Assembly: GCF_947568905.1 (NCBI RefSeq)
Contig: NC_079171.1
Coordinates: forward strand, 52,824,001 to 52,888,000
Source: Ostrea edulis
Taxonomy: Eukaryota
Reading direction: 5' to 3'
Length of the DNA: 64,000 nt
The notes below the pieces were generated by a model, which had not been told where the DNA came from, did no database searches, and saw only the letters and a program-made list of their open reading frames with translations. Position numbers and translations under genes: made by a program. Positions 21,447-63,990 of the stretch are shown here, one piece after another; position 1 is the stretch's first letter; the number at the start of each line of letters is the position of its first letter.

Positions 21447-21524
21447 TTCTGTAATAAAATGTTAGATGAATACATGTATTTTAATAATGGTGATGAGACG
21501 ATGATTATGATGATGATTACATGT

Positions 21525-24983: not shown

Positions 24984-25056
24984 GCCTGGATAGTTCAGTG
25001 GTTAGAGCACCTGACTAGTAATGCAGGGGTACCAGGTTCGATTCCCGGTCCCGCCA
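24984..25056 (+). pseudogene. tRNA-Thr(AGT)-like pseudogene or SINE head
   Basis: A box TAGTTCAGTGG, loop CT-AGT-AA, B box GGTTCGATTCC. Acceptor stem pairs 5/7 and the anticodon stem has a bulge. Confidence 0.6.
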
Positions 25057-28604: not shown

Positions 28605-28724
28605 ATGAGTACAGACCGTAGCCCGCTCAACACTGGGCTTAGTATGATGAACTTTGATGGCCTTGACCTTCAGAGTCAGCAGGAAAAAGAACTACAACGA
28701 GAAAACGAACAGCAACAAAATGAG
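28605..28724 (+). CDS. CEP152: CEP152 coding exon 1 (MSTDRSPLN...QQQNE)
   Basis: Acceptor at 28544, 40 codons, GAG|GTCAGT donor. Start could instead be the downstream MM. Confidence 0.8.
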
Positions 28725-31700
28725 GTCAGTATCATTCTGTGGTTAATTAAGTCAGTATCTGTGGTTAATTAGATCAGTATTGGGGTTAATTAGGTCAGTA
28801 TCTGTGGTTAATTAGGTCAGTATCTGTGGTTAATTAGGTCAGTATCAGGGTTAATTAGGTCAGTATCTGTGGTTAATTAGGTCAGTATCGGAGTTAATTA
28901 GGTCAATGTCTGGGGTTAATTAGGTCAGTATCTGTGGTTAATTAGGCCAGTATCGGGGTTAATTAGGTCAGTATCTGTGGTTAATTAGGTCAGTATTGGA
29001 GTTAATTAGGTCAATGTCTGGGGTTAATTAAGTCAGTATCTGTGGTTAATAAGGTTGGTATTTTGGGTTAATTAGGTCCGTATCTGAATTAATTAAGTCA
29101 CTATTGAGAAGAGGTCTTTTTTATTATATGTATTAGATGTGTGTTTATGTGGCCTGTAGTTTTGGTTTTGATTATAGACATGAAGGTCAACATGGTCAAA
29201 GGTTGTGGTTTGTGGATATTTGTCATTGGTAGGAGTGCACCATGATATACAATTTAGTTGTTTACATTTAGCCGTTGTTTACATCCAGTGGTTGTTGTTT
29301 ACATTCAGCGGTTGTTGTTTACATTCAGCGGTTGTTGTTTACATTCAGTGGTTGTTGTTTACATTCAGCGGTTGTTGTTTACATTCAGTGGTTGTTGTTT
29401 ACATTCAGTGGTTGTTTACATTCAGTGGTTGTTGTTTACATTCAGTGGTTGTTGTTTACATTCAGTCGTTGTTTACATTCAGCGGTTGTTGTTTACATTC
29501 AGTCGTTGTTTACATACTGTGGTTGTTGTTTACATTCAGCGGTTGTTGTTTACATTCAGTGGTTGTTTACATTCAGTGGTTGTTGTTTACATTCAGCGGT
29601 TGTTGTTTACATACTGTGGTTGTTGTTTACATACTGTGGTTGTTGTTTACATTCAGCGGTTGTTGTTTACATTCAGTGGTTGTTGTTTACATTCAGTCGT
29701 TGTTGTTTACATTCAGTGGTTGTTGTTTATATTCAGTCGTTGTTGTGTAAGTGTACCGACTCATGAGAAGTATTGAAGTTAACTAAACTGATGCCCATCG
29801 GTTCTAGATCTGAGGTGATGTGGGACGTACTCATGAAGTTCAGTAGTTGTTTTACATACAAATAGACCTTTACAGAGAAGTATTGAAGTTGACTAAACTG
29901 ATACCCATCGGTTCCAGATCTTTTGATGACATGCAAAGTATCATGATATATTGTATCGTATCGCAACTTGGGGATCATGATATATTGGCTTAGTTCAGTA
30001 TCGTCCCAGCTCCAGTCATTTGGGCATTTTCATTTTGAATTTTGTGTTTAGAATGAAGTTAGATTAATTAGGTAATTAATAAAGTAAATGTAAGTAAATA
30101 ATTAGGTAATTAATAATATGTTATGGTGATGACAGCTGCTAACGTTCATGAAAATTATTCAGATTTTGGGATTGGATATATTATTGTGTATCAAGTGGAT
30201 GGCAAACTGCACATATTTAACCTCTATCTATTTAATCTCTTTCTCGTGCCTTGTATAGAAAACTAAATGGTGGATGAATTATGAATTTATATATATGAAT
30301 TACAGATGAGGAATTCTCAGGGGAAAAGAATGATAATGTGTGTCACATTCCTTCATAATGACATTGGAAAACCATTTAATTTTGGTCTATGGAAATTTAA
30401 AAAATCTTTTAGAAAGTGCTGAATTTGAATGAAGCCCACACACGTACGGTTTAAACACATACAGAACCTGAATGTAACATTCAGTTATCGGCAAACTTTG
30501 CCAAAGTTTTGAAAACTTACCAGAGATTTTTGTGATTTTGTTGATATTTTTATAACTATATACAGGAAAATGTTGAAATATTTTACCAGTTCATAGCAAA
30601 TTTTACCTGGTTATAGTCTAGTGGTCTGGAGACTTTTGGATTGTGAAGCGTGTGTATACAAAATGCAAGAAGCAACATGTTTTTGTAAATTAACATACAT
30701 GCATGTGTCCGTACCTATATTTTTGATATGCTAAATAAACATTTAGATTTATTATTCATCTTTTTCAATTTGCATTACATCAATTGATATTTATATGTTG
30801 TGATTCCAAGCATGGCCTTATAAGAATGATAGTAGTGTATATTCTCCTTGTGGTGCGGCCATTACATTTTGTGTGAATGAGACGAGTTTAAGGCGCGAGT
30901 GTCCTCTAGCCAGTAACCCTATATATCATGTTGGTAGACTCTCTTACCTTAACTCACATACATACACTGTATATGTATGTTCAGCACTTGCAAAAATCAC
31001 CCCGTATTTCAATTTCATTTCGTACAAGTTTCTAAACATGTTGAAAACCCCGGTACCTTGGGCATTACGAGAGGGTGTTCTTAGTTGTAGGAACGTGTGC
31101 CCGATCCCTTTGTCTTTAATATCTTAACAATAGAATATGTTTAGCTCCGCAGGGAAAGTCAACAGATGTTTGGTGATAATGACTAAGTTGTCACTGATGA
31201 GCTTGGGGAACTTCACACGCTCTTTTTATATTCCTGATTGGCTCACAGTGCAAAGGCAGTGCAGTCTCACTCCAGTCCAGGAGGATGGGATCTTACGGGG
31301 GATTAGTGTCGTATCGGCAGTCACCACGACAACACCACGGCAACACGATGCCTGTTAATTCATCAGAGCTCAATCAAAATGATCGCCTTTTCCTAACTCT
31401 TTGTAGGATTAAAAATAATGCTCTAAGCATTGAAAGAGCAATCTAGAGAAAACAATTGATGTAGGAAGAATCCTAATTGGAATAGGGTATTAATGGTTTT
31501 CCTGGTGCTTGAGGTGACACGGAGAGAGAGAGAGAGATTTCTTGAGAGAGACAATTGGTACTGAATTAAGCCTTCCAGGTTATGATTGTAAAATTTCATG
31601 TAGTGTACAAATGAGAATGATTGGTTATTTTTCTTTTGGTGAATGATGCTGGGGTATGCAATGAATTCAGTTCAGTGTTTGCTGCAAGATTAGTGTGAAA

Positions 31701-34700
31701 AAAGAAGAATTGGAGAATTACAGAAAACACAGATGAACTGTTAGGATTGATTGATTGGATATTGTTTAATGTCCTGGGCATCTCAAGAGTTTCTCACCCA
31801 TATGGAGAGTCTGACATAACCATTGCAGGTGAAGGGTGCAAAATTTAGGCCCATGATCGGCGCTTACAGCCTTTGAGCAGTAAGGGATTTTTATCATACC
31901 GTACCTGTGTGACACGGGACCTCGGTTTTTGCGGTCTCATCCAAAGGACCAACCCATTTAGTCGCCTCTTACCACAAGCAAGGGCTACTGAGGACCTATT
32001 CTAACCTGAATTTCAATTGGAAAATGTGACAAAGTCGTGCTGGATTTCATACATGTATTTTCCCTGACATAAGTCATTGCACAAAGTCGGTTGAATTAAG
32101 TTCACCTGCTTCAATGTGTTTGATGGCCTCCGCGGAGTATCGTGATGTTCAGTATGGCACCGGAAATGACAACTTTTTCTTGAATCCTTTCCGATTAAGT
32201 AACCTTAGTGAGAAGTTGGAGTGGTGCCCATGTCAAGGTTATCTGCAGGTCAAAGTTCACCCAGCTGTTATTGAGGACATTGGTGATTTGTATTCTATGT
32301 TGATAAAGGTAGTGTAGATTCGGGGATTACTGTTTAAGATTGGTCAGTCCTGACGTTCAGTTTTGTAGTGTTTATTATTTAACCGGAATGAATTTACTGA
32401 TAAAGCTTATTTTTTGTTGTACACTGGCTGTGAAACTTGGCCTGACCCCCAGGCTATGATCTGAAATTTCATTCCTGCCTGAGGATTTGACTGTTTCTGG
32501 CTGTTAGACAAGTTATGATGTCTAACCCAGCCGGAGTCTTCAAGAATCCTTTGGTTCAAATTTATGCCCTGGGAAATTTCGAACTTTTCCCTAATTTCGA
32601 AAATAATCTTTCATTTCAGGAATGAGTAAAAGCCTTATGCCAATTTTGAGAAACATGTTTGCTAATCTTACACGCACCAATGTCTATTTGAGAAGAGTTT
32701 ATTTACAAGTGATTTTTAATTGCAACAGTTGAAGGCATTGCTAAAGGACGCTTTTGACGATTTAATCGATGAGGACGATGAGTTTTCCGTGACATCAGAT
32801 GAAGGAGGAGACTCGCGGAATCACAGCCTCCATTTCAAATCTAAGGATGAAACGTACGTAATAAAGAACAAAGAGGACAGAAATTTTGATCGTATTTGGT
32901 GTAAATAAAAATCGAAAGGGATCTCCCCTTTAAAAAACCCGCAGGATATATAAGATTTTTTCACCACGCAGAAGATGAACAATAATTTTTTTTGGGTGAA
33001 TTGGTATGATATTTCATCTTTTGGAAATCATGAAATGAAATCCTCACAGAATTAATTGTTGATGCCAAGCAGGAAACTATGCAGGAATTAAAAATTCTGC
33101 AGTGTGTCAAAGAGTCAAGTACTTGTTTGTGGTGGATTTTAAATGAATTTGGGGATAAAAAAAACTAATAATTTCACTTTGTTGTTGACAGGGAGCCCAT
33201 AGTGGAGGAAGATGAAGAACCGTCTGGACTTTTGTTTGCCAGGAACCGACGAACGTACCCCCTCCCCACCTCCACACCCCTCGGAGGTCTCCCCACCATC
33301 GCTCAGAGTCCCTACGGCTCGATGTCTTCACTGAGACAATCTCAGGACAGCCTCAGAGCATCTCAAGAGCAACTGAGATCATCTCAGGAAGGAGGTAAGC
33401 ACTTAGAGTATCTCGGGAGGACTTTCTGGAGATAACACAAAGATGAGAATCTCTACACAGTGAGTGGTGGAGCTTTTAAACTCCAGTGTACATGCTAAAG
33501 TTAATTCTTTCACAGGGAGGCTGACCTCATGGACCAGCAGGTTTCATTGGAGAGGGTCAGAATCAGAAATCACATTACATATCTTATTCTTGAACATGTT
33601 GTAATGTACATACAACATAAAAAAAAGTCACCATGTTTGGTAATGCTGTAACTTGATGCTACTGATGACCCTGTAGTTAGATTATATCGGATAAGCAGAG
33701 GCTTGGACTGGCATTATATTAGCTGACAACTCTCTCAGCACAGGGAGATGAGTTTTCTTTGGAACATAAGTTTATTCAGCATGATCAATTTTTATGACTT
33801 TAGTATTTGAAATAGAGATATATGATATAAACAAGTTCATTGTGTTGAAATTTTTGGTTTTGGATGGATCTTTAAAATTTATTGAGATGTGGGACTGTAC
33901 TGTACGTATAAATCGAGTCTGATGATTAGGAATAAGCTGGACTGTTTGTAGAAGTTCGACGGTCAGTTTGGATTTCTTTGGTGTACACCACAGCTTACTT
34001 AAGAGCGTGTAGGATCAACTTAGGAGAGAGTATTGTCCATCTGTAGGAATCTGAATCTCGGATTAATTGAATCTTGAGGAAGATATGGCGAGATGAAGAT
34101 TTGTTCTCCATGAGAGAACATCAGTTCCAGCGTGGAGATTGTATAACATCAGGGCTTAATATCCTTGCATACAGGTCCGGTAAATGAACCTGTTGGTCTC
34201 TTTTTTCCCCCCAGATTTCCCAAAATATCAGCTCACAAGCATAGTAAGAATGGGATCTGTGTTGCTGCGTAAAATCTTGGGAGAAAAGTCCGTATAAGGG
34301 GAATTTTTAGCGAGACACAAATTTAGCGATTTTCCCATAAAAATTGGTATATAATTTAATGAGAGCTAATTTTAGCGACTGTATAATTCCAGGAAAGATA
34401 ACTATGACCTCCAATATGGAATAAATTGTTAGCAATATTCAATTTTAGTGATCTCAACACCCTCGCTAATAATATCAAAATTAAATCCACGCTAAAAATT
34501 CTGCTTATATGGTAACAATTTTTCAACCTAAAATTCCCTATTGTATTGTATGGTACAGGGTCCAGTACCGTTTCGGTACTGGACCCTGTTCCAACAAGGA
34601 TCAATTATGAAGCCCTGAACATTGAGGCGGTTACTTTGATTTGAGTTGTGTCAAGAGTAGAAATGAATCTGAATAATGCGTATAAGCTTTTTCCATTGTT

Positions 34701-36201
34701 TTATATATATACACAAGACCGGTGTGCTTTCTTTTATTTGCAGTTTTGAGACGGTCCCAAGAAGGTCTGTTAGAAAGTGATGGATACCATAGTAACAGTG
34801 AACAGAGCAGCACCAAGTCATCCAATCACCATCATCGTCCCCAACACCATCGTCATCAGTTCCACCAGGTACCGGATTGGACCGGTCAGGACGTGTTCTC
34901 GCACCATGGTCAGCCGATCGTCTATGATCCCACTCATCACGGTAATCAGTACCTACCGCATCACGCAAACCACGAGGATCCGCATTACAGATACGGGGAG
35001 TTTCCCGAGCGGCAGGAAGCTGAGGGCGGGGCGGACGAACCTCCAACAGACATCAGACATTTACCCGGACATTATCATTATCAACATCTTCATCATTACA
35101 CTGGGTACTACAGGTCAGCGGGTTTCTTCATTATTTTCTGTGTTTTGTGCAGAGTAGAAGACACATAGTGATCTTTAACTGCAGTCTTTGTCTGTGTGTC
35201 TGTTTGTCTGTCTGTGCATCCATCTATCAGTCTGTCTGTAGTCAAACTTTACTGTAACTGTAGATCTGGAACCCTCTAGGAAAATATTTGGACTGATCAG
35301 ATGTAAGGCTTCAGCCGTGCACATTTTTTTCTGCACTGTATATGAAGTTTTTATAAGGGGTGGATCTGTATCTCCCTGATCTGTTCCAATATTTTCTCAG
35401 AGAGCTACAGATCTGCAGCTAACTTCACTGTGAAGTCACTAGAAGATGACACTCTTTATTTCAAATTTTGTAGACCCATGGCTCCATTTTTGATTTATGA
35501 AATGTAAATGAAACTTTGTATAAACTTATCTGACATTACATTTTCAGAGACCTGCCTGAAGAAGAGGATCATCCAAGGGCAGACAACCCATACATGCCAT
35601 ACACGCAACCACCACATTCTCAAGCATACCCACACAGTTTACAATCAGACCAAGGCTATGTTACAAACGCTACCTCAGTTTCACATGGGCATCCTGTTCA
35701 CCCTACCCCAATCTCAACAGGACATCCTGTTCATTCCTCACAAGAATATCCAGTTCATGATGCTCCGGAGAAGGATTTCAGGGGAGATTACCAAGTCACG
35801 TATAAACGCAGGGATGACCATGAAGAAAGTGAGAGCGAAGAGGAAGTGCCAGAGGTCAAAGAGAAACGCCCAAAACTGGAGGAGGGGCATGAGAGCACAG
35901 GATCAGGTGTGTATAGACGCTGATGTAGGAATGGGAGAGGATCCGAGATTTAGATCCTGTTACTCTGTATTCATGTCGGGAGGATCCAAGATCAAGCTGC
36001 CGAGTGTCCAATATCCGTTTATCTTGTACTGTAAAAGTGGTTATTTACGCTGGGGGTTTAGTACGTTGTTCCACATCCAATATTACGCATGGTGGAAAAT
36101 GCGTGGTAACTGAATATTATATTTATATTATATCAAAAATTTATAACTATACACATGGGGGAAAATTTACTTGCTTATTACATGACTGCGTAATTAGTGT
36201 A

Positions 36202-36239
<38 letters not shown>

Positions 36240-38558
36240 ATAGATAACCAATAATCACTTTTTTTACAGTATTCCATTCAGCAATTATTTTCTCAAACTT
36301 TACTGAGCTCTTTACTCTTGTGTCCAAAAAAAAAGAGCCCCCCCTCCTTCCCCCACTCAAAAAAAGAACCACATCAAAACTGCAAAAGAAATGAGATTAT
36401 GAATTAATTACAGCAGCTGTGTTTATGTAGTAGAGAAGTTTCATTCTGTTTTGAATGTGATGTAGTCTTATGCAAATACTTTTGCCCAAAATATTCCAGT
36501 TGGTGCTTTCGACAACAGACAGCTCGCTCAGCTTCAGATCTTGTACAAAGCCCGAGGAAGCAAACTGGAGGAGATGACGAGGGACTTTGAGCATTACAAA
36601 CAGGAAACAAGTCGGGAAATACGCATCCTGAAACACCAGATCTCACTGACTAAAGGTAATCTCACTGACTAAAGGTAATCTCACAGACTAAAGGTAATCT
36701 CACGGACTAAAAGTAATCTCACTGATTAAAGGTCATCTCACTGATTAAAGGTCATCTCACTGACTAAAGGTAGTGTAAGAAAGAAAAACACCAGTCCTCG
36801 CTGTCCACAGTTAATGTAAAAAACAATGACCAGAGTTCACTGGCTAAAGCATATAGCAAAATACATTCTGTACATATCTTGTTTTAGGTGAGAAAGAGGG
36901 GACGACCACCAGCTTACAACAGTCTCAGGATCTTCTGATTGAGGCGAAGACGGCAAACGCTCAGCTGAGGGGGAAACTACAGGCCACTGAGAATCAGGTG
37001 GAGGCCCTACACAAGGGGAAGGAGGAGGTTTGTAGCAGCCCATTAATAACGAGTCAATATAAGCATCCAATTAATAACGGGTCAATATAAGCATCCAATA
37101 TAACTATCCAGTGAGGTGTATAGCAGACCATTAATAACGAGTCAATATAAGCATCCAATTAATAACGGGTCAATATAAGCATCCAATATAACTATCCAGA
37201 GAGGAGGTTTATATCAGCCCATTAATAACGAGTCAATATAAGCATCCAATTAATAACGGGTCAATATAAGCATCCAATATAACTAACCAGCAAGGTGTAT
37301 GACAGCCTATTAATAACAGGTCAATATAAGCATCCAATATAACTATCCAGAGAGGAGGTTTATATCAGCCCATTAATAACGAGTCAATATAAGCATCCAA
37401 TATAAATATCCAGTGAAGCGGTTTATATCAGCCTATTAATAACAGGTCAATATAAGCATCCAATATAACTATCCAGAGCGAGGAGGTTTATATCAGCCTA
37501 TTTATAACTGGTCAATATAAGCATCCATTATAACTATCCAGAGAGGAGGTTTATAGCAGCCCATTTATAGCAGGTCAATATACACATCCAATATAAATAT
37601 CCAGCGAAGAGGTTTATATCAGTCTATTAATAACGGGTCAATATAAGCATCCATTATAACTACCCAGCGAGGAGATTTGTAGCAGCCCATTTAGAACTAG
37701 TCAATATAAGCATCCAATGAGGAGGTTTGTATCAGACTCAATATTAATTAGTCAATATAGCATCCATTAGAATTATTCAGTGAAGACGATTATAGCAGAT
37801 CATTAATAATTGGTCAATATAAGCATCAAATATTTCTATCTAGCAATAAGTTTTACACTGCAGCCCTATGATTTATCATCCTGGGTTCCTGTTATTTTCT
37901 TCTTGGTAATAACTAGTCAATAATTTGTAAAAAAAAAAAAATAACGAAATAAGATAATTTTTTTATTCTGATTTCCATGAGCCTCATTGATAAAGCTCAT
38001 TCTGGGTGACCTTTGGCATGTGTTTGACTTTTCTCATGTATGAATTTGAACCCCCTCAGTGAATCATGTTGATAATACTTGACGTTAGATTTCTTTATGA
38101 TATCTTTTACAGGCTGTAAAAAGTCTACAGACAGCCGAGTCCACCATAGAAACTCTGAACCAACAGCTTGCTGAGATGGGGGCCTCAGATAGTCTCAGTC
38201 GTGCTCGAGTTGAGCATGAACGAGTTCTGGCAGGCGTCCAACAGAGACATGACAAAGAGGTCAAAGTTCTCAAAGAAAAGATTGAGGATCTGACCGGGAA
38301 GTTGAATGATTCGGTGAGTCTCAAAGTCTCCTTTCAGGATTTTTCTCTTGTAAATTGTTGCAGGTGTTTTGACTTGAAAATGCGGTTCTCATATATTTGT
38401 ATACATATACACTGTATGTTATTTTGAGAAAGAAGAGAATTGTTATGTTTTGCTGATAAACGCATCAAGGCAAGGTCATGAAAATGCAGTGCTCTGAATC
38501 AAAGTCATTGATAAATACAGAATAATTCTAATAAATGTTGTCTGTAAAATTCATTCTC

Positions 38559-38592
<34 letters not shown>

Positions 38593-38657
38593 GTTTTCTG
38601 ATCAAAATTTGTCCGTTGTCTGTCGTCGTTATTGTCATTGTAAACTTTTCACATTTC

Positions 38658-38703
<46 letters not shown>

Positions 38704-53700: not shown

Positions 53701-56700
53701 GGTGGAAGCTAGACTCCAAGAAGGTAAAGAATGAATTATGAGAATTGGAAGTTATAGTCCACGAAGGTAAGGTCTGAATTCTGAGAATTGGAAGTTACAG
53801 TCCACGAAGGTAAGATCTGAAATCTGAGAAGTGGAAATTATAGACTCCACGAAGGTAAAAAATGAATTCTGAGAGGTGGAAGCTAGACTCCATGAAGGTA
53901 AGGTCTGAAATCTGAGAAGTGGAAGCTAGACTCCACGAAGGTAAGGTCTGAATTCTGAGAGGTGGAAGATAGACTCCACGAAGGTAAGGTCTGAATTTTG
54001 AGAAGTGGAAGATAGACTCCACGAAGGTAAGGTCTGAATTTTGAGAAGTGGAAGCTAGAATCCACGAAGGTAAGGCCTGAAATCTGAGAAGTGGAAGTTA
54101 GACTCCACGAAGGTAAGGCCTGAATTCTGAGAAGTGGAAGCTAGACTCCACGAAGGTAAGGCCTGAATTCTGAGAAGTGGAAGCTAGACTCCATGAAGGT
54201 AAGGTCTGAAATCTGAGAAATGGAAGTCATAGACTCCACGAAGGTAAAGTCTGAATTCTGAGAAGTGGAAACTAGCTATGTCATTACAGGAAAATGGGAC
54301 TGTGAGACCCAGATCAGAATTTTCTGTAATTAACACATTGCAGGAAGGTAGGGTTGTGAGAGCAAGTGAGATCAATCAAAATTTTCCATTCCTAGGCACA
54401 GACTGTTACAAATCAGCTGTTCGGTCAAAAATGTTGGGCTCACTATAAAAACATGCAGTTTACTCTCATTTGTTCAGTAGAGGTAAAGAATTGCTCTGTT
54501 TCTGAAACAGGTGCATTATAATAAACCTTTGCTGAATGTTTGTTGATTGATTTTAGCTCAGACAGAGTGGCTTACACAGAGAAAGGAAATCTTTGATTCT
54601 CAACTGACTCAGGAAAGAGAAAAGTGGAAAAAATCTTCAGAGAACGAACTTCAACAGAAAGTTGAGGAGGAAAGGGAGAAGTGGAAAAAGACATTGGAAA
54701 ATGAACTTCAGAAGAATGTAGAGGAAGAGAGAGAAAGGTGGAAGAAGACTGCAGAGAAGGAATTCCAACAGAAAGTGGAGGACGAGAGAGAAAAGTGGAA
54801 AAAGACGGCTGAAAACGAATTTCTACAGAAAGTGGAGGAAGAAAAAGAAAAGTGGAAAACGACATTAGAAAATGAAGTGAAACAGAAAATAGAGGAAGAG
54901 AAAAACACCTGGGAAAAAGAAACAGAGAGAATTCTGCAGGAGAAATTGGCAGTAGAAAGAGAAACACTGAGAGGGGAACTGGAGAAAGAGAACCAGATTA
55001 AAGTATCTGACAGAAGAGATTTGTGGGAAAAAGAGTCTCAAGAAAAGCTAGAGAGGGAAAAGTCAGTGTGGGAGAAACAAGCGGAAGTAAGGGAGAATTC
55101 TTATATTGATAAAAGATTTATTTACTCATATAAATATCAGTATTGACTATGATATAAAGCTGTAGGGTATTTATACCAAGCAAAATGTAGTATTTAAAGA
55201 TTCATTGAGAAATTTGAAGATGATTATAACAATGCAATAATTTTGATGTCAGAGAAATTTAATTGATGTAAATCACAGTCATGTAAAATGAATAAAGCAA
55301 TTGTTTCCAGTTCACAAGAATACAAATATATGCTTTGTTTCAGGAAAGACTAATGTCAGAAAAGCGTGCCTGGGAGAAAACTGCAACGGAGAAGCTGACC
55401 TCAGAAAAGGATGCGTGGGACAGGGATGTGGAAGAGAGGTTCCGAGAGGAGCGGGCAGAATGGGGGAAAGTGTCAGAAGTGGAAATACAGCGCAAGGTGA
55501 CGGAAGCCATAGAAAAATGCCAGAGAGAGACGGAGAAGGAAATGAGGCGGGCTGTAGAGAAGGAAAGGTCAAAGGTCACTGCCAAGTGAGTTTATAGCTT
55601 TTTCCTTCAGTTTTCCATTTTTTAAAAACTCATTTACTTCAGTTTGTGAATTTGGTGTGTTCATACATCTACGTATTGAATTACCACATAACCCTGTATT
55701 AAAACTTATGGGGATCATACTTGGCCTGTATGTTTTATATTCACTCCTTACAACATAAGAAGCTTATTAAGGTTGAAATGACCAGCAAAACTCTGTACAA
55801 TATTTTAATCGTCTTGCAGGACTGAGCTGGACAAGGAATTGAAGAAAGAGAAGGAAAAATGGCAGAGGAAGTGGGAGGTGGAATTACAGGAGAGGATTCA
55901 AAAGGAGCGTAAGGACTGGGAGGAAAAGACGGAAATCGACATTCTACAGAGAATCCAGACAGAGAAGGTAGTCAGATCTAGGTCAAAGAAACGCTTAGAA
56001 CAAAAGCTGCGGAAAAAGATCCAAGCCAAAGATGCACGAGTGTTGATCAAATATATTGCATTATTTTAATTTTTATTTCTACGGTCATGCATGAATGATG
56101 TGTGTTTCATTTTATCAGCATTTGCAATTTCTGACAATAGACTTCTGACTAGGCCTTAGATTTTACATGATGATATACTGAAGTTTTATATTTGTTTTAT
56201 ATCGTAAAATGTATGTGTAACGTTAGAACTTTTTATGTTCAGCAAAATTGGAATGATGCCAAGGACAAGGAGATTGAAGAAAAAGTTGAGAAAGAGCAGA
56301 AGAACTGGGAGCAGAGCTTAGAATTGCAGACCCAGGAGAGGATCGAAACAGAAGTGGAGGGGCGGATATCACAGGAAAAGACCCAATGGAAGGCAGCAGC
56401 AGACAGGAAGATGACAGAGGAAATTCAGGCAGCCTTGGAGCAGGCTCGCAGAGAATGGGAGGACAGTCACGAGGAGAATGTGCAGAAAATTCGAGATGGC
56501 ATGGAGGAATCGATACAAGAGCGTGTAGCTGCTGAAGTTAGTTTTCTTTTATGACTGAAAAATATTTGAAGAAAAGGTAGCTTTTATTTTTTTCATTTGA
56601 TGACATTATATGCAGGTTTAGTGGTCGCAAACAATTTTATTGGCAATATGTAAGTGGAGCCAACCAGTATTGACATTCTAAACTAGACAGAGGCTAAGTA

Positions 56701-59700
56701 TTCACTCAACGTTTTACTTGATATATACCTTTTATCTCATTGATCTGTGTTTTTGCATAAAATGTTTAAGAAATGAATATAATTGATGTTACGTTTTTGT
56801 ACTGGGTTACTATGACGTCACAATCAAAAGGCTTGCCTCTTGTAAAGGCTCATTTTAACTGGCTCAAACTTCAGTACAAGAACCAATCAAAATGCAGATT
56901 ACAAAGCAGGTGTATCAGAAATGATGTGTGTATGACAGACTGTTTCTGTTCCATTATGGATTGGATGTCTGTTAAGGAAGGAAATCTTGGCAACATTTAT
57001 TAATACAGATAAAAAAAAGCTTCAGGCAAAAGTGTTCAGAGTAACATATCTTGAAATCTTTGTATCATGAAATGCTTAGTACAGCTAGGCTACATCTTTT
57101 GAAATGCATGTAACTTTTTTTTTCTGAGTTATTGAATTGAATATGCAAATGAAAGCAGTAATAAGTGATTTGTGTGTGTGTTAGGTGTCATTGGCCGTGG
57201 ACGAGTCCAAACGACTGTGGCAAAAAGAACATGATGCGGAGATGTTGGCAAATAATTCGTCTTTTGAGATCTCCCAAAGTGTTCTGAAAGAAGTAAGTTG
57301 TGAAATTTCATCTTTTGAGATTTCCCAGTGTTCTGCTTTGTCAATGAAAGGTCAAAGACAGGTTAAGGGTCAAGACAGTAATCAACTGGATGGTGTTGTA
57401 GCTACATATAAATGTACAGGAAATAGAGTAAATGTAGGTGGGGAGAGAAAGATCCTTTTGAATTTCTGGGTTAACGGTCAAAAGTCAAGGTAACAGTAAA
57501 TACTAATATGTAATGCAGAGGGAATGCTCTATTGTGCTGTGTTTTTGTTTACACAGCAATGAATACCTGAATGTATAGAAAATTTACTAAAGTTATTGTA
57601 CATGTACGTATATATATATAATTTACAGGAGATTGAGACCCTAAAGAAGGACCTAGAGTCGCTGACAATACAACTGAAATCACGAGAGGAGAAATTCCGG
57701 AGGGAGAAGTCCGAGTTGATTCGACAGAAGGATGTGGAGAGGAAACGAGCCGTGGAAGAGGTACAGGATCAGTGTGAAAAAGATTACCAGCAGTTCACAT
57801 CCGACCACCACGACACTTTGACACTAGCACTGAAAACCGCACGCGATCAGCACAATAAAGAAAAGGTAAAACCGCACATGATCAGCACAATAAAGTAAAG
57901 GTAAACACAGTACCACTGAAAACAGCACGGTAAAGAAAAGGTTTATACAACAAACTGCCCGCAATCAGCACAATAAAGTAAAGGTAAACACACTGACACT
58001 AGCACTGAAAACCGCACGCGATCAGCACAATAAAAAAAAGGTAATGATACTGACACTAGCACTGAAAACCGCATGCAGGCAGCACACTAAAAAGAAGGTA
58101 ACCAGTGATTTATATTCTAACATTAACACTGCACACAGGCAGCACATTTACACTAGTATTGAACACCGCATACAGACAGCACATTTACACTAGCACTGAA
58201 CACCGCACACAGACAGCACATTTACACTAGCACTGAACACCGCACACAGGCAGCACATTTACACTAGCACTGAACACCGCACACAGGCAGCACATTTACA
58301 CTAGCACTGAACACCGCACACAGGCAGCACATTTACACTAGCACTGAACACTGCACGCAGGCAGCACATTACACTAGCACTGAACACTGCTGTAATAACA
58401 AGGAGTCAAAGTGAACACATACATTTAGTAGACTGGAAGAATGTACAACAAGGTTAATGGCACTAGCAAAATTAATGCTGAAAATTTTGTCACATTTTGT
58501 GTACAGTTTTGAATGCTGAAAAGTAGACCCACACACACAAATTAAAATTGTTGTCGGGAAAAAATGTCATTTTATCAGAAACAATGTTCCATAGAAACAT
58601 GGGTTCTGAGGAAAATTAACATCCGAAAAAGTTTGTATAACTTAGGGATAGCGAGTTCTGAAGTGTTATTTTACTGGTTTTGATGTGGGATGTGTTGCTT
58701 TTTACAGATGGAGCTAGAAAGGAGGCATGCTGAAGAGATCAAAAAGCACCAGTTTAAAGAGAACCAGATGAAGGAAGCTTTTAAAACTGCCACCTCCGAC
58801 AAGGTTTGTTTAAAAAACAAAATCTAAAAATTTATGAAATACTTTGTGTTTTTTGGTTGTATATAGATTAACTCAACAATTGCTCAACAAACTTTCACTC
58901 GTACATGTATGGAGATGTCACAATTGCTGGTGAAGGGCTGCAAAATTTAGGCCTATGCTCAGCACTTATAGCCTTTGAGCAGGTAGGGATATTTATCGTG
59001 CCACACCTGCTGTAACACAGGACCTCGGTTTTTGCGGTCTCATCCGAAAGACCGCCCCATATATTCACCTCTTACAGCAAGCAAGGGGTACTGAGGATCT
59101 ATTCTAACCGGGATTTCCACAGTTAACATACAAAAGAGTTATGTTTCAATACTGTTAATAAAACCTGTGACTGAGTGGCGTAACACAAATTCTCATCATC
59201 ATGCCTGTTAAATGTCAACAGTGATTGTAGACCTACATTTGTACAGGTTAACAAACTCATGTTGTGATCTTCATATTCATGAATCTTGGTCGTCAAAAGT
59301 CAACAGGCTGCATAGTCGTCTACTTCACGTAAGAAAATGACACAATTTGTTATCAAAATAATAAAATGCAGAGGTCTCTGCCCTATATGTAAGAAAAGGA
59401 CAATTTGTAGAAATTTCAGTGCGAAAAGGACATAGTACAAACCACAGTGTGACACTTGAGAGTAGCAGAACAAAGCATTTTCATTGATAACTCGAAATGT
59501 GCTTTATTCCTACATGGATCGCTACTTAAATAACGCTACTTGACAATTCTGCATTGGATTAATTATAATCTATGTACATTGTACATGGAGTTTCTCCTCA
59601 CAAAATTTTAGTCGCAACAAAATATCTTAATTATTTTCAGTTTTGCAAAAATGTTGACATTAATATAGAATGTTGAAATGTTATTATCTTTTTCAGACCA

Positions 59701-62700
59701 CAGGCCATCCTTCTGAGGAAGACGAAAAATACCAAAGAGAGAGAGAATTGTGGGAGAAGGAGAACTATCGACTGAAACAGGAAGTGATGGAACGTGATGA
59801 CCTACTGGAGAAAGCCGATCGTCATTTGGCACAGGAAGTAGATCGCCTACGCTCAGAACTGGAAATAGCTTATCAGAATCGACTAGACGCTGAAAAATTG
59901 AATTTAAAGAGAGAATTCAAGGAAGGACATCAGTCTGATGAGTCAGATCGCGCTAAACTGGAAGCTAAATTAATGGATCTCAAGCACGAGAAAGAGAGAT
60001 TCCGAACGGAGTTAAGTAAAGTCACGGAAGAAAACAAAAAAGTGATTGACGAGATCCACAAGGTCACGGACGAAAGTTACAAGGTCAAATGTCAGGTACA
60101 TAGACTTGGGGAGGAGAACCAGAGATTAAAAGAGGAATTGAAATCCACGAAGGAGCAGGGATTCGACGAGAGTAGACGGTATGTGAAGGAGATTCAGGAA
60201 CTCAGGGGGAAACTGGATAACCAGGAACAAGGGGTTGAAGTTCAAAAACTCAAGGCCGAGTGTGAGAAACTGAGGTCAGAGAATGACGGGATTTCCACGA
60301 TTCGGTTGGAATCTGAGAGATTAAAAACCAAGTGGCAAGAGATTCTGAGTGAAAAATCTGATCTGGAGACGAAGTTCTCCAGGCTGGAGTCGAGACTTCA
60401 GCAGAGTGAAAACGAGAAACAGGAAATGGTGGAGAATTATGGGATACTTAAGTCGCAGCTGGATAAAGTGGCCTCAGAGAAGGTTTTGTTCTCGGAAAAT
60501 ATTAAAAATCTGGAGATGGCTTACAAAAAAGATCTTGCTCAGCAGAAACAGAAACAGGACGAAAGTCAGGCCCGCCTAGCTCGCTCGGAGAAAATGCTGT
60601 ATGACATCAAACACTATTACAAGTATGATATATATCTAGAGAAACTTATTTAAATGAAGATTTCTACGGGATCTATGTATTAACATGCTGTTTGGTTATA
60701 GATAAGCATTTAATTAAATGAACATTTTACGGAATTTATAAGATTAACATGCTGTTTGCTTTTTCGATGCAACAAAATGCCATGAATCAAAAATTAATTT
60801 TTTTGAAGAAATTATTTTATTTCAAGATTTAAAATTTTCATTTAAAGTTTAGCATATATATTCTATCATTGCTATGCACCAACATGTTCAGAACTTGGTA
60901 ATATTTACGTTGGGGGGGTGTTGGGGGTTGGGGGGGTTAGAATAATTTTCCTTGTGACCTATGTGCATCTACCAATGTGTCAAAATTTTTCCCTTCAGTC
61001 GATACTTGACTAAAATATTTTGTGTGTAAGCTCAGTTATTATAGTCAATAGTGCTCATGTTTTAAATTTCATAAGAATTGTGAATGTTTTGTTCATTTTA
61101 TTTGAAATTGGGGATAATAATTTTAATTGGTAGGAAAAGGAAAAATGTCTTTTAAATGTATATAATGTCTACCTAAGAAATTGGACATTTTCTTCTTACT
61201 TTAAAATTGATTCATAAAGAATGAGTGGACTTCTTCTTTCCTAGCTGCAATAATGTAGCCCTATCCAATTTTTTCCTCTCCTAAAAAAACCTCAGATAAA
61301 AAAAAGTAGGAGAGAGCTATATTGCAGCTACATTGTACATTTATTTGTTTCCCAATGCTTCTTGCTGTCTGAAACCGCTTAGAGACATCAGCGTTTCATG
61401 ATTTTGTCCTGTGTCTTGTAGAAACGAGATCGATAAGGTGAAGAAGTCCTTAGAGAAGGACAACACCATTGCCATGGAGTCCATGAAGAACAAAATGAGA
61501 GAAATGGCCAAGGCCCACAACTCCGCGATGTCCTCCCTGACGCGTCAGTATAAGGAGGAAATCAGCGAGATGAAGGGGCACTCAACAGAAAAGTCGTGCA
61601 GTGACACGGAAGTGCAGGTACACGTGACTATTTAGTCTCCATCGAGCAGACTCTTTGAAGCATGACTATTACGTTTTTAAAAAAGTCTAATGTTGCCTTT
61701 TGTTTGAATTCATTTCCAGATCTTCCATGATTTTTTTCTCTATATCAAAATCAGTATTTAAATTGTTTTTAATGCACAAGGTTCAAACTTCTGGCCCTTA
61801 AACTTAATTCATTCAATGATCTTTTTTTTTTTGGACTAAAACTGTTTTTGTGCTGGTATTCTAGCAATTTAGATGTTGAATACTTTAAAAGCTAAACTGC
61901 GATGGGACATCTTGTGAAAATAAGGACTGACTAGATTATTAGGATGTATATATATGTGTACTGTACAAAGAGAGGTAACTCGTACCTCACACAGGATTAG
62001 TGATGGATTTTAAAATTTATAAAAGTGTTTAAAATTTCAGACTGACTCTGAGGACCTGAGTGATGACAGCATGTTTGAATTGAGGGACCAATACTTGGAC
62101 ACGGTCAACAAGATCAAAGGTCAGAGTTCAAAGTGACTGCTGAGGTATCAAGAGTCACTATTGTAGATTAATGTTCACCTTTAGAGGGGCCCTCGGATAT
62201 ACCTGTCCATTTTGCACACCTTAGAACTTTGCAAGATATCAGATATAAATGTTACCTTAGATCTGTATATGATATCAGATGTAAATGTCATGAGATCGCT
62301 CCATTGATTACACATATGAGTCACGTGATTTGCTCTTCATCAGTTGAAAAAAGATGAGTATCACCCATAATGCTTTCCGAAAAAATGTCGCCGTCACTGC
62401 GGTAGACTTCATTGATAAACCCGTAATTAAAATAATTAGATTGTTTAGAAAGTACCATAAACGTTTTTAAATTCCAGACAAGCTTTCTCATAGCTTCAAA
62501 CATTTTGTTTTTGCTTGGTTCGAAAGAAGAAGAAAAAAACATTGCAGCTAATATGACGTCATAATTTGTGACTGTTTACATCAAGCACGTTATATTTCCC
62601 GCGTCAAATGAAGAGGCGGATAAAAGTCGCGTTGCAAGATGTTAATGGGCTTTGCTCATCTCAACGGTCACACCGTACAACATATTATTCACTATGATCA

Positions 62701-63772
62701 GTGATGCTATGGGTGTTTTATAAGATATCAGATGACCATGATCACTGTTTTATAAGATATCAGATGACCATGATCAGTGATGCAATGTTGGGTGTTTTAT
62801 ACGATATCAGATGACCATGATCAGTGATGCAATGTTGGGTGTTTTATAAGATATCAGATGACCTTGATCAGTGATGCTGTGTTGGGTGTTTTATAAGATA
62901 TCAGATGACCATGATCACTGTTTTATAAGATATCAGATGACCATGATCACTGTTTTATAAGATATCTGATGACCATGATCAGTGATGCTATGTTGAGTGA
63001 CACATGATTATTGCATCCTCAGAATTTGTCATGAAAGTAATTGCTTGTATAATGCATTGTAGAATTATAGATGCAGTTTGAATGTATATTTTATGGTACT
63101 TACCAAGTCTGCTGTATATTTATATATATGTACATGTTTCTGCCATACACCAAAAGGGGCCTCCGTGGTCGAGTGGTTAGAGCATTGCACTCTAAATCAC
63201 ACGTCATATCACCTCTGGTCGGCGCGGGTGCGAAATCCGCTTGCGCTGGTAAGTGAGAAAGTTTCCCAGTTTACTTTCGGAAGGTCGGTGGTCTTTTCTA
63301 GGTACATTGTATCTGGGTTCTCTCTTCCACCAATAAAAAAACTAGGCACCACCAGATAACTGGAAAAATTGTTGAGTGTGGCGGAAAACAGCAAATCAAT
63401 CAATCATACACCAAAAATGATTGGATCTCTTCAACCCGTTCATTGAGCTTATGATATGCAACAAATAACTGTTATTCAAACTCATGACAAATGAAGCATA
63501 GAAGTTAATGTGATTCTAAGAGGAGAGAACTCATGGTTTGAGCTTGTGTTAATACATGCACTGAATAATTCACACAAACGGCAGTGTAATAATGTTTAAA
63601 GTATTTTTATTTTACTCGTAGATGATGTCATGAAACATATCACGGATACAAACATGCGAGCAGCAGAAACCGTCCGACAAGAAATGCAGAAAGAGCGTAA
63701 CACAACATTGGCTCAACTCAAAAAGATTTACATGGAGAATGTCCGCAAAGTGCTGCACAACGAAATCATCGG
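28605..63772 (+). CDS. CEP152: Centrosomal protein of 152 kDa (asterless orthologue), 28 coding exons in the window, continuing past the end
   Basis: All GT-AG junctions are phase-consistent (6107 nt). Recognisable CEP152 blocks: [89 protein letters not shown]. Confidence 0.93.
28720..29105. repeat. 22-bp minisatellite (AGGTCAGTATCTGTGGTTAATT)n seeded at the exon 1 donor
   Basis: The unit contains AG|GTCAGT; about 16 copies. Confidence 0.9.
29265..29748. repeat. 17/20-bp minisatellite (GTTGTTGTTTACATTCAGYG)n
   Basis: Direct reading; accounts for the three overlapping spurious ORFs. Confidence 0.95.
31747..32016 (-). mobile_element. Structured-head SINE copy
   Basis: Reverse complement matches 14402-14672. 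Confidence 0.85.
32729..32853 (+). CDS. CEP152: CEP152 exon 2 ([17 protein letters not shown]...)
   Basis: CAG acceptor, AC|GTACGT donor, phase 0 to 2. Confidence 0.9.
33192..33394 (+). CDS. CEP152: CEP152 exon 3
   Basis: GACAG acceptor, G|GTAAGC donor, phase 2 to 1. Confidence 0.85.
34290..34512 (+). mobile_element. Tc1/mariner-like MITE
   Basis: TIR CCGTATAAGGGGAATTTTTAGCG / CGCTAAAAATTCTGCTTATATGG (20/23), TA after the right end. Other copies at 39988 and 48925. Confidence 0.75.
34744..35113 (+). CDS. CEP152: CEP152 exon 4 (His/Gln-rich)
   Basis: TTTGCAG acceptor, AG|GTCAGC donor, phase 1 to 2, matching exon 5. Confidence 0.8.
35548..35906 (+). CDS. CEP152: CEP152 exon 5 (His/Pro/Glu-rich)
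   Basis: TTTTCAG acceptor, G|GTGTGT donor, phase 2 to 1. Confidence 0.8.
36500..36655 (+). CDS. CEP152: CEP152 exon 6 ([12 protein letters not shown]...REIRILKHQ)
   Basis: Conserved block, phase 1 to 1. Confidence 0.92.
36642..36772. repeat. 19-bp array (CTCACTGACTAAAG|GTAAT)n straddling the exon 6 donor
   Basis: About 7 copies. Confidence 0.92.
36888..37027 (+). CDS. CEP152: CEP152 exon 7 ([14 protein letters not shown]...)
   Basis: TTTTAG acceptor, GAG|GTTTGT donor, phase 1 to 0. Confidence 0.9.
37020..37830. repeat. ~60-90-bp compound array seeded at the exon 7 donor
   Basis: Units contain GAGGAG|GTTT.TAGCAGCCCATTAATAAC...TCAATATAAGCATCCAA. Confidence 0.9.
38113..38313 (+). CDS. CEP152: CEP152 exon 8
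   Basis: [12 protein letters not shown] block, TCG|GTGAGT donor. Confidence 0.92.
38561..39183 (+). mobile_element. Helentron-associated non-autonomous element (HINE) with ~166-bp Cg170-like satellite monomers
   Basis: 5' TTAGCTCACCTGAGC subTIR, GTC-microsatellite, about 2.5 monomers (TCTTCTC.AGAACCA..., AAGCTT site, TTCAAGTTTG), 3' CTCAGGTGAGC and GGCCCATGGGCC hairpin, then CTTGTT. Confidence 0.85.
39362..39509 (+). CDS. CEP152: CEP152 exon 9 ([16 protein letters not shown])
   Basis: Conserved block, phase 0 to 1. Confidence 0.93.
39495..39685. repeat. 55-bp array straddling the exon 9 donor, 4 copies
   Basis: Junction copies at 39510 (GT), 39565 (TT), 39620 (TT) and 39675 (GT). Confidence 0.92.
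39851..39942 (+). CDS. CEP152: CEP152 exon 10
   Basis: TTTTAAG acceptor, CAG|GTAAAT donor. The last 32 exonic nt plus GT are duplicated exactly at 39945-39978. Confidence 0.88.
39988..40217 (-). mobile_element. Tc1/mariner-like MITE copy
   Basis: Reverse complement matches 34290-34512. Confidence 0.7.
40830..40993 (+). CDS. CEP152: CEP152 exon 11 ([16 protein letters not shown]...DLGIK)
   Basis: Conserved block, AA|GTATGT donor. Confidence 0.92.
40983..42200. repeat. 34-bp minisatellite, about 36 copies, straddling the exon 11 donor
   Basis: Unit GAACCTGT(G/A)AA(G/T)TATGTAAAGATCGAGATTGTCT. Confidence 0.95.
42410..42650. repeat. ~59-bp tandem repeat, about 4 copies
   Basis: ATAAATCATCAACAGAATTCCTGAAC...CGTATCTTAAAACGCTATAAA. 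Confidence 0.9.
42882..43083 (+). CDS. CEP152: CEP152 exon 12
   Basis: LKIELERCL block, phase 2 to 0. Confidence 0.9.
43546..43671 (+). CDS. CEP152: CEP152 exon 13
   Basis: TTTCAG acceptor, 42 open codons, GAG|GTAAGG donor. Confidence 0.85.
44045..44304 (+). CDS. CEP152: CEP152 exon 14 ([18 protein letters not shown])
   Basis: Conserved block, phase 0 to 2. Confidence 0.93.
44752..45163 (+). mobile_element. HINE-like element with two internal ~160-bp monomers
   Basis: GTCCCC 5' and GGGGAC 3' motifs, repeated GTGGA..CAACTCCTCG...ATATGTAGTTGATCATATT, CTTGT end. Confidence 0.6.
45207..45342 (+). CDS. CEP152: CEP152 exon 15
   Basis: KELYVKVC block, phase 2 to 0. Confidence 0.9.
45399..45663 (-). 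mobile_element. Structured-head SINE copy
   Basis: Reverse complement matches 14402-14672. Confidence 0.85.
46010..46220. repeat. 22/24-bp array straddling the exon 16 acceptor
   Basis: Unit GAATGGTCTGTAAATGTTAT(AT)T. Only the last copy has ...TTATAG|TTGAAGG. Confidence 0.9.
46212..46361 (+). CDS. CEP152: CEP152 exon 16
   Basis: 50 open codons, AAG|GTAAAG donor. Confidence 0.88.
46356..46505. repeat. 50/51-bp array straddling the exon 16 donor, 3 copies
   Basis: ACTAAG|GTAAAGTAAA at 46356, 46407 and 46457. Confidence 0.9.
47500..47826. repeat. ~41-bp tandem repeat (AATTCAAGTTTGTTCAACTGAAAACTTCCTTATGTAA), probably derived from a Cg170-like monomer
   Basis: Direct reading; the sequence resumes after the inserted MITE at 48394. 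Confidence 0.8.
47827..48393. mobile_element. 567-bp MITE, PIF/Harbinger-like
   Basis: TIR GGTCGCACTTGTTTCA / TGAAACAAGTGCGCCC (15/16) and 3-bp TSD AGA (47824-47826, 48394-48396). Confidence 0.8.
48925..49210 (-). mobile_element. Partial Tc1/mariner-like MITE with internal 43-bp tandem copies
   Basis: Matches 34290 and 39988; AGAATTGAATATCGCTAACAATTCAATCCATATCGGAG recurs three times. Confidence 0.7.
49346..49651. mobile_element. Kolobok-like MITE containing a tRNA-like segment (49480-49548, minus)
   Basis: TTAA flanks at 49342-49345 and 49652-49655, TIR GGAGGCATGCTACA / TGTAGAGTACCTCT (10/14), internal A box TAGCTCAGTAGG and B box GTTCGAGTC. Confidence 0.7.
49740..49820 (+). mobile_element. 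SINE 3' tail fragment
   Basis: GACATCTCCATATG...GAGTGAAAAATTCTCAAGCGGGACGTTAAACAA...(CAAC)n. Confidence 0.75.
50820..51135. repeat. ~55-60-bp tandem repeat
   Basis: GGGCAGTAAACACATTAATAGGAGACCCT.CATACAAAAATCTAACTTCAGG recurs about 5 times. Confidence 0.88.
52500..53390. repeat. Two adjacent CT-rich minisatellites (~70-bp unit at 52500-52760; ~65-bp unit at 52790-53390)
   Basis: TCTGTCTGTAGGTGTCTCACTCTATCAACCCATTTCC... and CCTCTCTCCTGTCTGGTTAACTCTACAACCCCACCTCTC. Confidence 0.9.
53576..53723 (+). CDS. CEP152: CEP152 exon 17
   Basis: ATTTCAG acceptor, G|GTAAAG donor, phase 0 to 1. Confidence 0.88.
53702..54275. repeat. 43-bp array, about 13 copies, straddling the exon 17 donor
   Basis: GTGGAAGCTAGACTCCACGAAG|GTAAGGTCTGAATTCTGAGAA; period 43 measured at 54061, 54104 and 54147. 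Confidence 0.95.
54557..55086 (+). CDS. CEP152: CEP152 exon 18 (19-aa Trp repeats)
   Basis: Phase 1 to 0; [19 protein letters not shown] repeats. Confidence 0.9.
55344..55585 (+). CDS. CEP152: CEP152 exon 19
   Basis: Phase 0 to 2, AA|GTGAGT donor. Confidence 0.88.
55820..55967 (+). CDS. CEP152: CEP152 exon 20
   Basis: Phase 2 to 0. Confidence 0.88.
56243..56536 (+). CDS. CEP152: CEP152 exon 21
   Basis: Phase 0 to 0, GAA|GTTAGT donor. Confidence 0.88.
57185..57292 (+). CDS. CEP152: CEP152 exon 22
   Basis: Phase 0 to 0, GAA|GTAAGT donor. The exon end is copied degenerately at ~57305-57335. Confidence 0.85.
57629..57865 (+). CDS. CEP152: CEP152 exon 23
   Basis: Phase 0 to 0, AAG|GTAAAA donor. 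Confidence 0.88.
57820..58390. repeat. Exon 23 donor-seeded array grading into a ~37-bp minisatellite
   Basis: ACTAGCACTGAAAACCGCAC...AAAG|GTAA copies are followed by (ACACAGGCAGCACATTTACACTAGCACTGAACACCGC)n. Confidence 0.9.
58708..58803 (+). CDS. CEP152: CEP152 exon 24
   Basis: TTTTACAG acceptor, 32 open codons. Confidence 0.82.
58855..59120 (-). mobile_element. Structured-head SINE copy
   Basis: Reverse complement matches 14402-14672. Confidence 0.85.
59697..60622 (+). CDS. CEP152: CEP152 exon 25 (large coiled-coil exon)
   Basis: 926 nt open, phase 0 to 2. Confidence 0.9.
61422..61617 (+). CDS. CEP152: CEP152 exon 26
   Basis: Phase 2 to 0. Confidence 0.88.
62041..62119 (+). CDS. CEP152: CEP152 exon 27 ([13 protein letters not shown])
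   Basis: Conserved C-terminal block, phase 0 to 1. Confidence 0.9.
62695..63000. repeat. Minisatellite (TTTTATAAGATATCAGATGACCATGATCA...)n
   Basis: Direct reading; ~35-50-bp variants. Confidence 0.88.
63156..63404 (+). mobile_element. tRNA-derived V-domain-like SINE with a 12-bp TSD
   Basis: TSD CATACACCAAAA at 63144-63155 and 63405-63416; homologous to 16039. Confidence 0.88.
63622..63772 (+). CDS. CEP152: CEP152 exon 28
   Basis: DDVMKHIT...[14 protein letters not shown] block. Donor GG|GTAGGT is assumed; without splicing the frame ends at GGG TAG. Confidence 0.82.
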
Positions 63773-63990
63773 GTAGGTAGAATATTTCAAAGTCCTGCAC
63801 AACGAAATCATTGGGTAGGTAAAATATTTCAAAGTCCTGCACAACGAAATCATCGGGTAGGTAGAATATGTCAAAGTCCTGCACAATGAAATCATCGGGT
63901 ATTTCTCAATGAAATTGTCAGGTATGTAAAATATTTTGAAATCTTTCACATTGAAATCATTGGGTAATACTGTATGTAAAATATTTCGAG
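63747..63990. repeat. 42-bp array straddling the exon 28 donor
   Basis: AAAGT.CTGCACAACGAAATCATCGG|GTAGGTAGAATATTTC at 63747, 63789 and 63831. Confidence 0.9.

Follow-up and report, generated by a model that had tools for sequence, protein, structure and literature searches.

Tandem arrays at exon-intron junctions of the Ostrea edulis CEP152 gene belong to a known class of splice-junction minisatellites

Minisatellites whose first unit lies across an exon-intron border have precedents in human and amphioxus genes. The human F7 intron 7 VNTR is a 37-bp minisatellite with its first unit placed across the exon 7/IVS7 border; the identical pseudo-sites in its downstream units are functional yet silent, as splicing takes the site furthest upstream (PMC1557585). 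In amphioxus, tandem duplications of exon-intron borders, termed 'mirages', leave splicing undisturbed and have been reported at the Adh3, troponin C, globin, and PGBD5 loci (PMC3087553, PMC3902484). A further proposal, the Rogers model, derives intron gain from tandem duplication across AGGT (cited in PMC3087553).

The tandem arrays in the CEP152 gene of the flat oyster Ostrea edulis belong to this mirage or F7-IVS7 class of junction minisatellites. Similar to F7 IVS7, their first unit consists of the exon end plus the donor, near-identical pseudo-sites follow downstream, and the most upstream site is the sole one used. However, F7 is a single locus, whereas in CEP152 the arrays are found at 12 of 28 donors, their units are unrelated, and copy numbers reach 36; the CEP152 case is known from sequence and contigs. 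With the amphioxus mirages, the CEP152 arrays share border duplications of variable unit length, undisturbed splicing, array edges that escape homogenisation, and an occurrence at several loci per genome. Mirages are described at 5' as well as 3' borders, and new introns have been suggested to derive from them, whereas the CEP152 arrays are strongly donor-biased and sit in introns that are old and common to molluscs. The amphioxus CEP152 gene itself has no such arrays. The Rogers model likewise involves a tandem duplication containing a splice signal, but it creates a new intron within an exon, while the CEP152 introns pre-exist, at positions conserved in up to nine species. We rejected a Rogers-type intron gain, as other bivalves and an abalone have introns at the array-bearing positions too, and amphioxus has some of them.

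A full-text literature search returned no paper uniting oyster, minisatellite, intron, and splice site. An earlier note on this DNA was not aware of a description at such density in one gene. The class is already known; the unusual part is the density of arrays, at 12 of 28 donors within one gene, which may not have been described before.

Anatomy of the CEP152 arrays

The window analysed here, a stretch of 64,000 nucleotides whose letters are the same as in GCA_947568905.1 OX387711.1, carries on its plus strand the O. edulis CEP152 gene, which has 29 coding exons. A protein search with a 91-aa exon translation retrieved full-length mollusc relatives, and a word search from one of these relatives led to the 'centrosomal protein of 152 kDa-like isoform X2 [Ostrea edulis]' (P0060). 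Aligned exactly with splicing, P0060 gave 28 exons in the window with canonical GT-AG borders, and a longer isoform (P0172) yielded 28 identical exons plus the final exon, which lies past the window end (Table 1). As exon 29 alone is located outside, all 28 CEP152 donors are contained in the window. The assignment to CEP152 is based on the exact translation of the exons to the O. edulis CEP152-like protein, on full-length similarity to CEP152 proteins, and on relatives from molluscs to vertebrates with PF25770 or PF25769; in the word search, PF25770, the CEP63-binding coiled coil, was carried by CEP152 proteins across this range and by the O. edulis protein, to which NCBI gives the name 'centrosomal protein of 152 kDa-like'. 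Pfam searches with ten single exons matched no model and were uninformative for CEP152, and a search of Rfam at the gathering threshold returned two tRNA-like matches and nothing else.

TRF reported 71 tandem-repeat rows in the window, which are richest in its second half, and many of the arrays, once printed in register, open with coding-looking sequence followed by GT. Among the 31 arrays in the gene with a period of at least 10, nine span a donor (exons 6, 7, 9, 10, 11, 16, 17, 23, and 28), three are intra-exonic, and one adjoins the exon 16 acceptor. A 20-nt junction probe (12 exon and 8 intron nucleotides, at most four mismatches) recurred in tandem at eight donors and at no acceptor. Local alignment with shuffle nulls provided a more sensitive test that is independent of TRF and counts any exon end recurring downstream as a copy, whether its donor is included or not. 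By this measure, 12 of the 28 donors exceed their own null, and the remaining 16 all fall below theirs. Strict criteria select nine donors (exons 6, 9, 10, 11, 13, 16, 17, 23, and 28), weaker copies are found at three more (exons 1, 7, and 22), and none of 27 acceptors passes under the same strict criteria. The resulting list of exons is identical to that of the earlier note, down to exon 13, which it had labelled degenerate.

The arrays consist of head-to-tail units of minisatellite size, as in mirages and F7 IVS7. TRF gave unit sizes of 19, 22, 34, 34, 42, 43, 51, and 55 bp, with array periods spanning 19-57 bp and copy numbers from 2 to 35.8, in agreement with the sizes and copy numbers (2 to about 36) previously noted. 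Sequence comparison revealed that the units of different donors are mutually unrelated, a relationship being seen only within the exon 23 pair (ex23/ex23b), and the arrays are independent, as had been claimed. Identity within arrays ranges from 84% to 100%, and the first copy is less alike than the interior copies; the higher likeness of interior copies is typical of concerted evolution.

Table 1. Coordinates of the CEP152 gene, its exon ends, and its junction arrays in the window
Feature	Position	Strand	Description
CEP152-like gene, coding exons 1-28	28605..63772	+	defined by P0060 and P0172 (exact spliced alignment)
Exon ends 1-10	28724, 32853, 33394, 35113, 35906, 36655, 37027, 38313, 39509, 39942	+	
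Exon ends 11-20	40993, 43083, 43671, 44304, 45342, 46361, 53723, 55086, 55585, 55967	+	
Exon ends 21-28	56536, 57292, 57865, 58803, 60622, 61617, 62119, 63772	+	
Exon 1 donor array	28725..29106	+	22-bp unit, ~17 copies, from intron base +1
Exon 6 donor array	36640..36772	+	19 bp x 7.0; unit = last 16 exon nt + GTA
Exon 7 donor array	37020..37831	+	complex 63/88-bp units
Exon 9 donor array	39484..39680	+	55 bp x 3.6
Exon 10 donor duplication	39911..39979	+	34 bp x 2, 100% identical
Exon 11 donor array	40983..42200	+	34 bp x 35.8
Exon 13 end and donor	43640..43727	+	one degenerate copy ~45 nt downstream, ~80% identity
Acceptor-side array, sole one	45998..46216	+	23 bp x 9.7
Exon 16 donor array	46351..46507	+	51 bp x 3.1
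Exon 17 donor array	53702..54275	+	43 bp x 13.3
Exon 22 end duplication	57250..57335	+	two degenerate copies, 57250-57286 vs 57303-57335
Exon 23 donor arrays	57833..58387	+	35 bp x 2.1; 57 bp x 2.6; 37 bp x 7.1, in this order
Exon 28 donor array	63746..63901	+	42 bp x 3.7

At the nine donors spanned by TRF arrays, the first unit lies over the authentic border, as it does in mirages. The three exceptions are exon 1, where only the last two exon bases are shared and every unit rebuilds (T)AG/GTCAGTAT, and exons 13 and 22, which are degenerate two-copy cases. The local-alignment scores are 27 against a null maximum of 17 for exon 1, and 34 against 27 for exon 13. The earlier description of the unit as exon end plus donor applies to most donors, but not to exon 22, where the exon end alone is visibly doubled and the donor has no clear copy. 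At exon 10, the unit comprises the last 32 exon nucleotides plus GT, and the exon 7 units each carry ...AGAGGAG/GTTTRT, which resembles the end of exon 7. The long exon 11 array has a higher-order period of 170 bp (five units). Intron 23 is mostly occupied by the exon 23 arrays, of which the 37-bp derivative retains exon-end sequence without the donor. The acceptor-side array runs up to the acceptor of exon 16 and takes in the first five exon bases, where it ends; the real site reads TAG, while the upstream copies read TAT and thus lack the AG.

Decoy donors and splice site choice

The downstream copies amount to 94 decoy junctions, 67 of which retain GT while 27 have lost it, which bears out the expectation of dozens of decoy donors. 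A match to the U1 consensus at least as good as that of the real donor is seen in 43 of the 67 GT-keeping decoys. At exon 17, GT is kept in all 12 decoys, and most of them (GTAAGG) match the consensus more closely than the real donor does (GTAAAG). The annotated exon 11 donor, GAA/GTATGT, is retained in 14 of 35 decoys, and an additional GTAAAG is located 4 nt downstream in the first 12 printed copies. Exons 9 and 11 have GT>TT in most decoys, and their nearest decoy lacks GT; at exon 9 this affects decoys 1 and 2, with decoy 3 intact. The nearest decoy is intact, however, at exons 6, 10, 16, 17, 23, and 28, so decoys have not been generally 'disarmed'.

Splicing was followed in contigs from X19 and X20, two runs labelled possible RNA, whose source is about 3% different from the window. 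Between them, the first X19 record, of 7,668 nt, and two contigs of X20 join exons 6-7-8-9-10-11; the stretch compared covers the joins from exon 6 up to exon 11. The X19 record is gapless and aligns in pieces at 36497-36653, 36886-37025, 38111-38312, 39361-39507, 39849-39940, and 40828-40993; its internal pieces add up to the exon lengths of the annotation. These lengths fit only the first copies, and therefore the first donor is used at exons 6, 7, 9, 10, and 11. No extension of +19, +34, or +55 was found in the spliced RNA contigs across exons 6-11. Five of the 12 array donors are thereby covered by RNA; at exons 1, 13, 16, 17, 22, 23, and 28, the RefSeq protein, which presupposes the first copy at each of the 28 donors, is the sole source for use of the most upstream site.

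The abundance of intact decoys could point to a selected function, either as an NMD-coupled dosage dial, as the earlier note had suggested, or as U1-binding enhancers that aid the donor or suppress premature polyadenylation. The GT present in 67 of 94 decoys and the superior consensus of the exon 17 decoys are in line with such a role. So is the in-frame stop that precedes nearly all decoys, among them those at exons 10, 17, and 28, where it had been noted before and is confirmed here. However, stops of this kind are the chance expectation for any 19-55 nt of intron and provide no evidence of design, the 27 decoys without GT follow no consistent pattern, and the RNA contigs contain canonical junctions only. 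Moreover, conservation of array positions between species does not exceed the chance level, weak donors are not favoured by arrays, and the pseudo-sites of F7 are silent (PMC1557585). We consider a selected function quite improbable, and the dosage dial in particular found no backing. Regulated unproductive splicing through poison 5' sites and NMD is not supported, given that the RNA contigs contain no decoy junction (a weak test, as contigs hide rare isoforms) and that arrays recur at orthologous donors no more often than by chance.

Donor excess in oysters and its possible origins

About 24% of the intron bases lie within arrays, so that under a naive per-base null a donor inside an array is unremarkable and chance would suffice as an explanation. 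We rejected this null, which is size-biased and ignores that a donor can occupy the first unit only. Since the functional donor is confined to the first unit, the proper null is a first unit that straddles the donor under uniform seeding. With a fixed 43-nt window, nine array starts are located within -40..+2 of a donor in O. edulis, where 1.06 would be expected (P = 6e-7). A seed-based null is more conservative: with the own best TRF period of each array and collapsed-array coordinates, it gives an expectation of 1.74 for the nine donor arrays. Like-for-like nulls in collapsed coordinates thus predict 1.1-1.7 arrays where 9 are seen. The acceptors, which serve as an internal control under like constraints, have 1 array in 28 by TRF count, against 9 for the donors, and 0/27 against 9/28 by strict alignment. 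An assembly or annotation artefact is countered by exon ends that were set by exact protein alignment and RNA contigs, and by DNA contigs from other individuals in two other studies (X2 and X5), which carry the array starts and show that the arrays do not stem from the assembly; these short-read contigs break inside the arrays. Chance or artefact therefore appears extremely unlikely as the source of the arrays, and the enrichment at donors over uniform placement is real in O. edulis CEP152.

We extended the comparison to the CEP152 locus of eight further species, for each of which the protein was aligned exactly, giving nine species in all (Table 2). All comparisons concern a single gene, in which each species contributes few events. 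A second protein search yielded no orthologue from Magallana or another close oyster.

Table 2. Donor arrays in CEP152 of nine species, with expectations under the seed-based null
Species	Donor arrays	Expected	Exons
O. edulis	9	1.74	
C. virginica	5	1.34	6, 7, 8, 13, 26
Mizuhopecten	4	1.43	8, 20, 21, 22
Haliotis	3	1.24	1, 4, 22
Pecten	1	1.80	24
Mytilus	1	1.12	15
Mercenaria	1	0.97	25
Pinctada	0	1.62	
Branchiostoma	0	0.24	

Under the seed-based null, a clear donor excess is confined to the two oysters, which together have 14 donor arrays against about 3.1 expected; the seven non-oyster species pooled have 10 against 8.4. For Crassostrea virginica, the expectation lies between 0.8 and 1.3 across both nulls. 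The array class as such is not restricted to oysters, a possibility that we rejected, as several arrays are found in Mizuhopecten and Haliotis, acceptor-side ones included (3 to 4 and 2, respectively). Across the nine species, 24 donor arrays compare with 6 acceptor arrays (P = 0.0014), and the latter number falls short of the 11.5 expected under the seed-based null.

The earlier note had taken the arrays to suggest a mutational process targeted to splice junctions, with survivor bias as a possible contributor. In such a process, aimed at 5' splice sites, DNA damage coupled to transcription or splicing (Pol II pausing, R-loops, or error-prone repair) would start tandem duplications more frequently at exon-intron borders than in other places, at least in oyster germlines. 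It is favoured by the excess in both oysters, by the independence of the units, and by duplications that are very young, namely the exon 10 duplication of O. edulis and a 183 bp x 2 duplication in C. virginica with two differences between its copies. However, the seven other species show no excess, although their CEP152 is spliced alike. When orthologous introns were matched by mapping their positions onto the protein alignment, nine pairs of arrays shared a donor across species against 7.2 by shuffling (P = 0.26), and no recurrent hotspot donor emerged. Donor strength shows no link with arrays either (P = 0.66 for the pooled species): in O. edulis alone, +5G is absent in 6 of 10 array donors against 3 of 18 others, but the signal is gone on pooling, and we rejected the idea that arrays compensate for weak donors. 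An excess at donors stands for two oysters, whereas a process targeting splice junctions in general does not follow, and we regard this mutational reading as rather unlikely.

On the whole, the CEP152 arrays are probably mirage-type splice-junction minisatellites that persist as a tolerated by-product of tandem duplication. Short tandem duplications straddling the exon end and the GT donor would have arisen independently at 12 CEP152 donors, and the arrays would later have grown or decayed via ordinary minisatellite slippage and unequal exchange. The splicing machinery would pick the 5'-most, authentic copy and treat later copies as plain intron, so that donor arrays would be harmless, unseen in mRNA, and able to persist. 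An equivalent duplication within an exon would break the frame, and one on the acceptor side would place false AGs upstream of the true AG; as duplications of both kinds would mostly be removed, the survivors would be mainly donor-side. If these genomes frequently undergo local tandem duplication, as we suppose, such duplication combined with tolerance would yield both the asymmetry between donors and acceptors and the near-expected counts in the seven other species. We infer the mechanism of duplication and expansion, as well as the selective filter, from this pattern.

The tolerance model does not account for the roughly 5-8-fold donor excess in oysters, which is absent in other molluscs. 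Mutation and tolerance alone would produce equal array densities at donors and inside introns, and the O. edulis and C. virginica counts contradict this. Mutation biased towards donors is one possible source of the oyster excess, weak positive selection another. Tentatively, a process specific to oysters (Ostreidae), whether mutational (tandem duplication coupled to splice donors) or selective (a benefit of extra U1 sites), may make 5' splice sites roughly 5-8-fold hotspots of minisatellite birth, with a quarter to 40% of the introns in some genes starting with arrays of their own donor.

In practical terms, gene predictors and short-read assemblers will trip at such junctions, and the arrays may well be length-polymorphic intragenic markers. 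The dozens of intact decoys that the spliceosome ignores turn oyster genes into a large natural experiment on how the true 5' splice site is told from identical rivals. A donor excess that holds genome-wide would raise the question of where minisatellites are born.

Repeats and genes upstream of CEP152

The first 8000 nucleotides of the window form a satellite-like or nested repeat region, lying upstream of the genes, with long repeated blocks, a 320-bp tandem and 77-aa open reading frames (ORFs) that are repeated at 1147, 4813 and 5935 as well as on both strands. Further downstream lies a Toll-like-receptor-type gene (see table), in which the ORF at 19491-20486, also on the minus strand, matches LRR_8 (6.6e-20). 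Of the two tRNA-like sequences, the first is tRNA-Ala-like and located within a 71-bp tandem duplication; it is likely a tRNA-derived repeat. A hammerhead ribozyme had been proposed at 21558-21601, and searching the whole window with Rfam at the gathering threshold gave no hammerhead match.

Features of the window and of the Mizuhopecten CEP152 locus (L007), used for cross-species comparison
Feature	Position	Strand	Location or basis
320-bp tandem	5143-5749		
Two tRNA-like sequences	17586-17731; 24984-25057		ARAGORN and Rfam (35 bits)
Toll-like-receptor-type gene	19231-21461	minus	ORF match to LRR_8
Neighbouring ORFs	19231-19566; 20640-21461	minus	
Very high-copy interspersed repeat	38556-39203		CEP152 intron 8
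Donor array, 34-bp unit	40983-42200		CEP152 exon 11
Acceptor-side array	45998-46216		terminates on CEP152 exon 16 acceptor
In-frame coding repeat, 57 nt (19 aa), ~5 copies	54613-54928		O. edulis CEP152 exon 18
Three consecutive arrays, 35, 57 and 37 bp	57833-58387		CEP152 intron 23; all derived from exon 23 end
Very long junction arrays	L007 48274-51728; 74158-78163		scallop orthologue (Mizuhopecten CEP152)

Other repeats within CEP152

The coding repeat of exon 18 is also found in exon 18 of C. virginica CEP152, where the same 57-nt unit is present in 3.6 copies. Intron 8 carries a repeat whose summed contig word depth reaches 1e4-1e6 in all four runs, compared with about 10-50 in its flanks, and hundreds of joints lead to other copies; its nature is probably SINE- or MITE-like. 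The introns of the gene also include a perfect 36-nt poly-C tract (36204-36239) and a 31-nt poly-G tract (48559-48589).

Arrays at exon-intron junctions

Very long junction arrays occur in Mizuhopecten CEP152, in which a 51-bp unit is repeated 68 times at exon 11 and ends exactly on the acceptor, and exons 20 and 21 have arrays on their donors, with 42 copies of a 36-bp unit and 45 copies of a 43-bp unit. In O. edulis, the exon 11 donor array also repeats at a higher order, every 170 bp: one unit in five preserves GAACCGGTGAAGTATG and its GT is intact, and the remaining four units of each period read AAATTATG. The final (37 bp) array of intron 23 retains the exon-end sequence, and the donor is gone; exon-end copies make up about two-thirds of this 842-nt intron (57866-58707). 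On the acceptor side, every upstream copy in the exon 16 array carries TAT, as opposed to TAG at the real site, and thus no upstream AG is offered.
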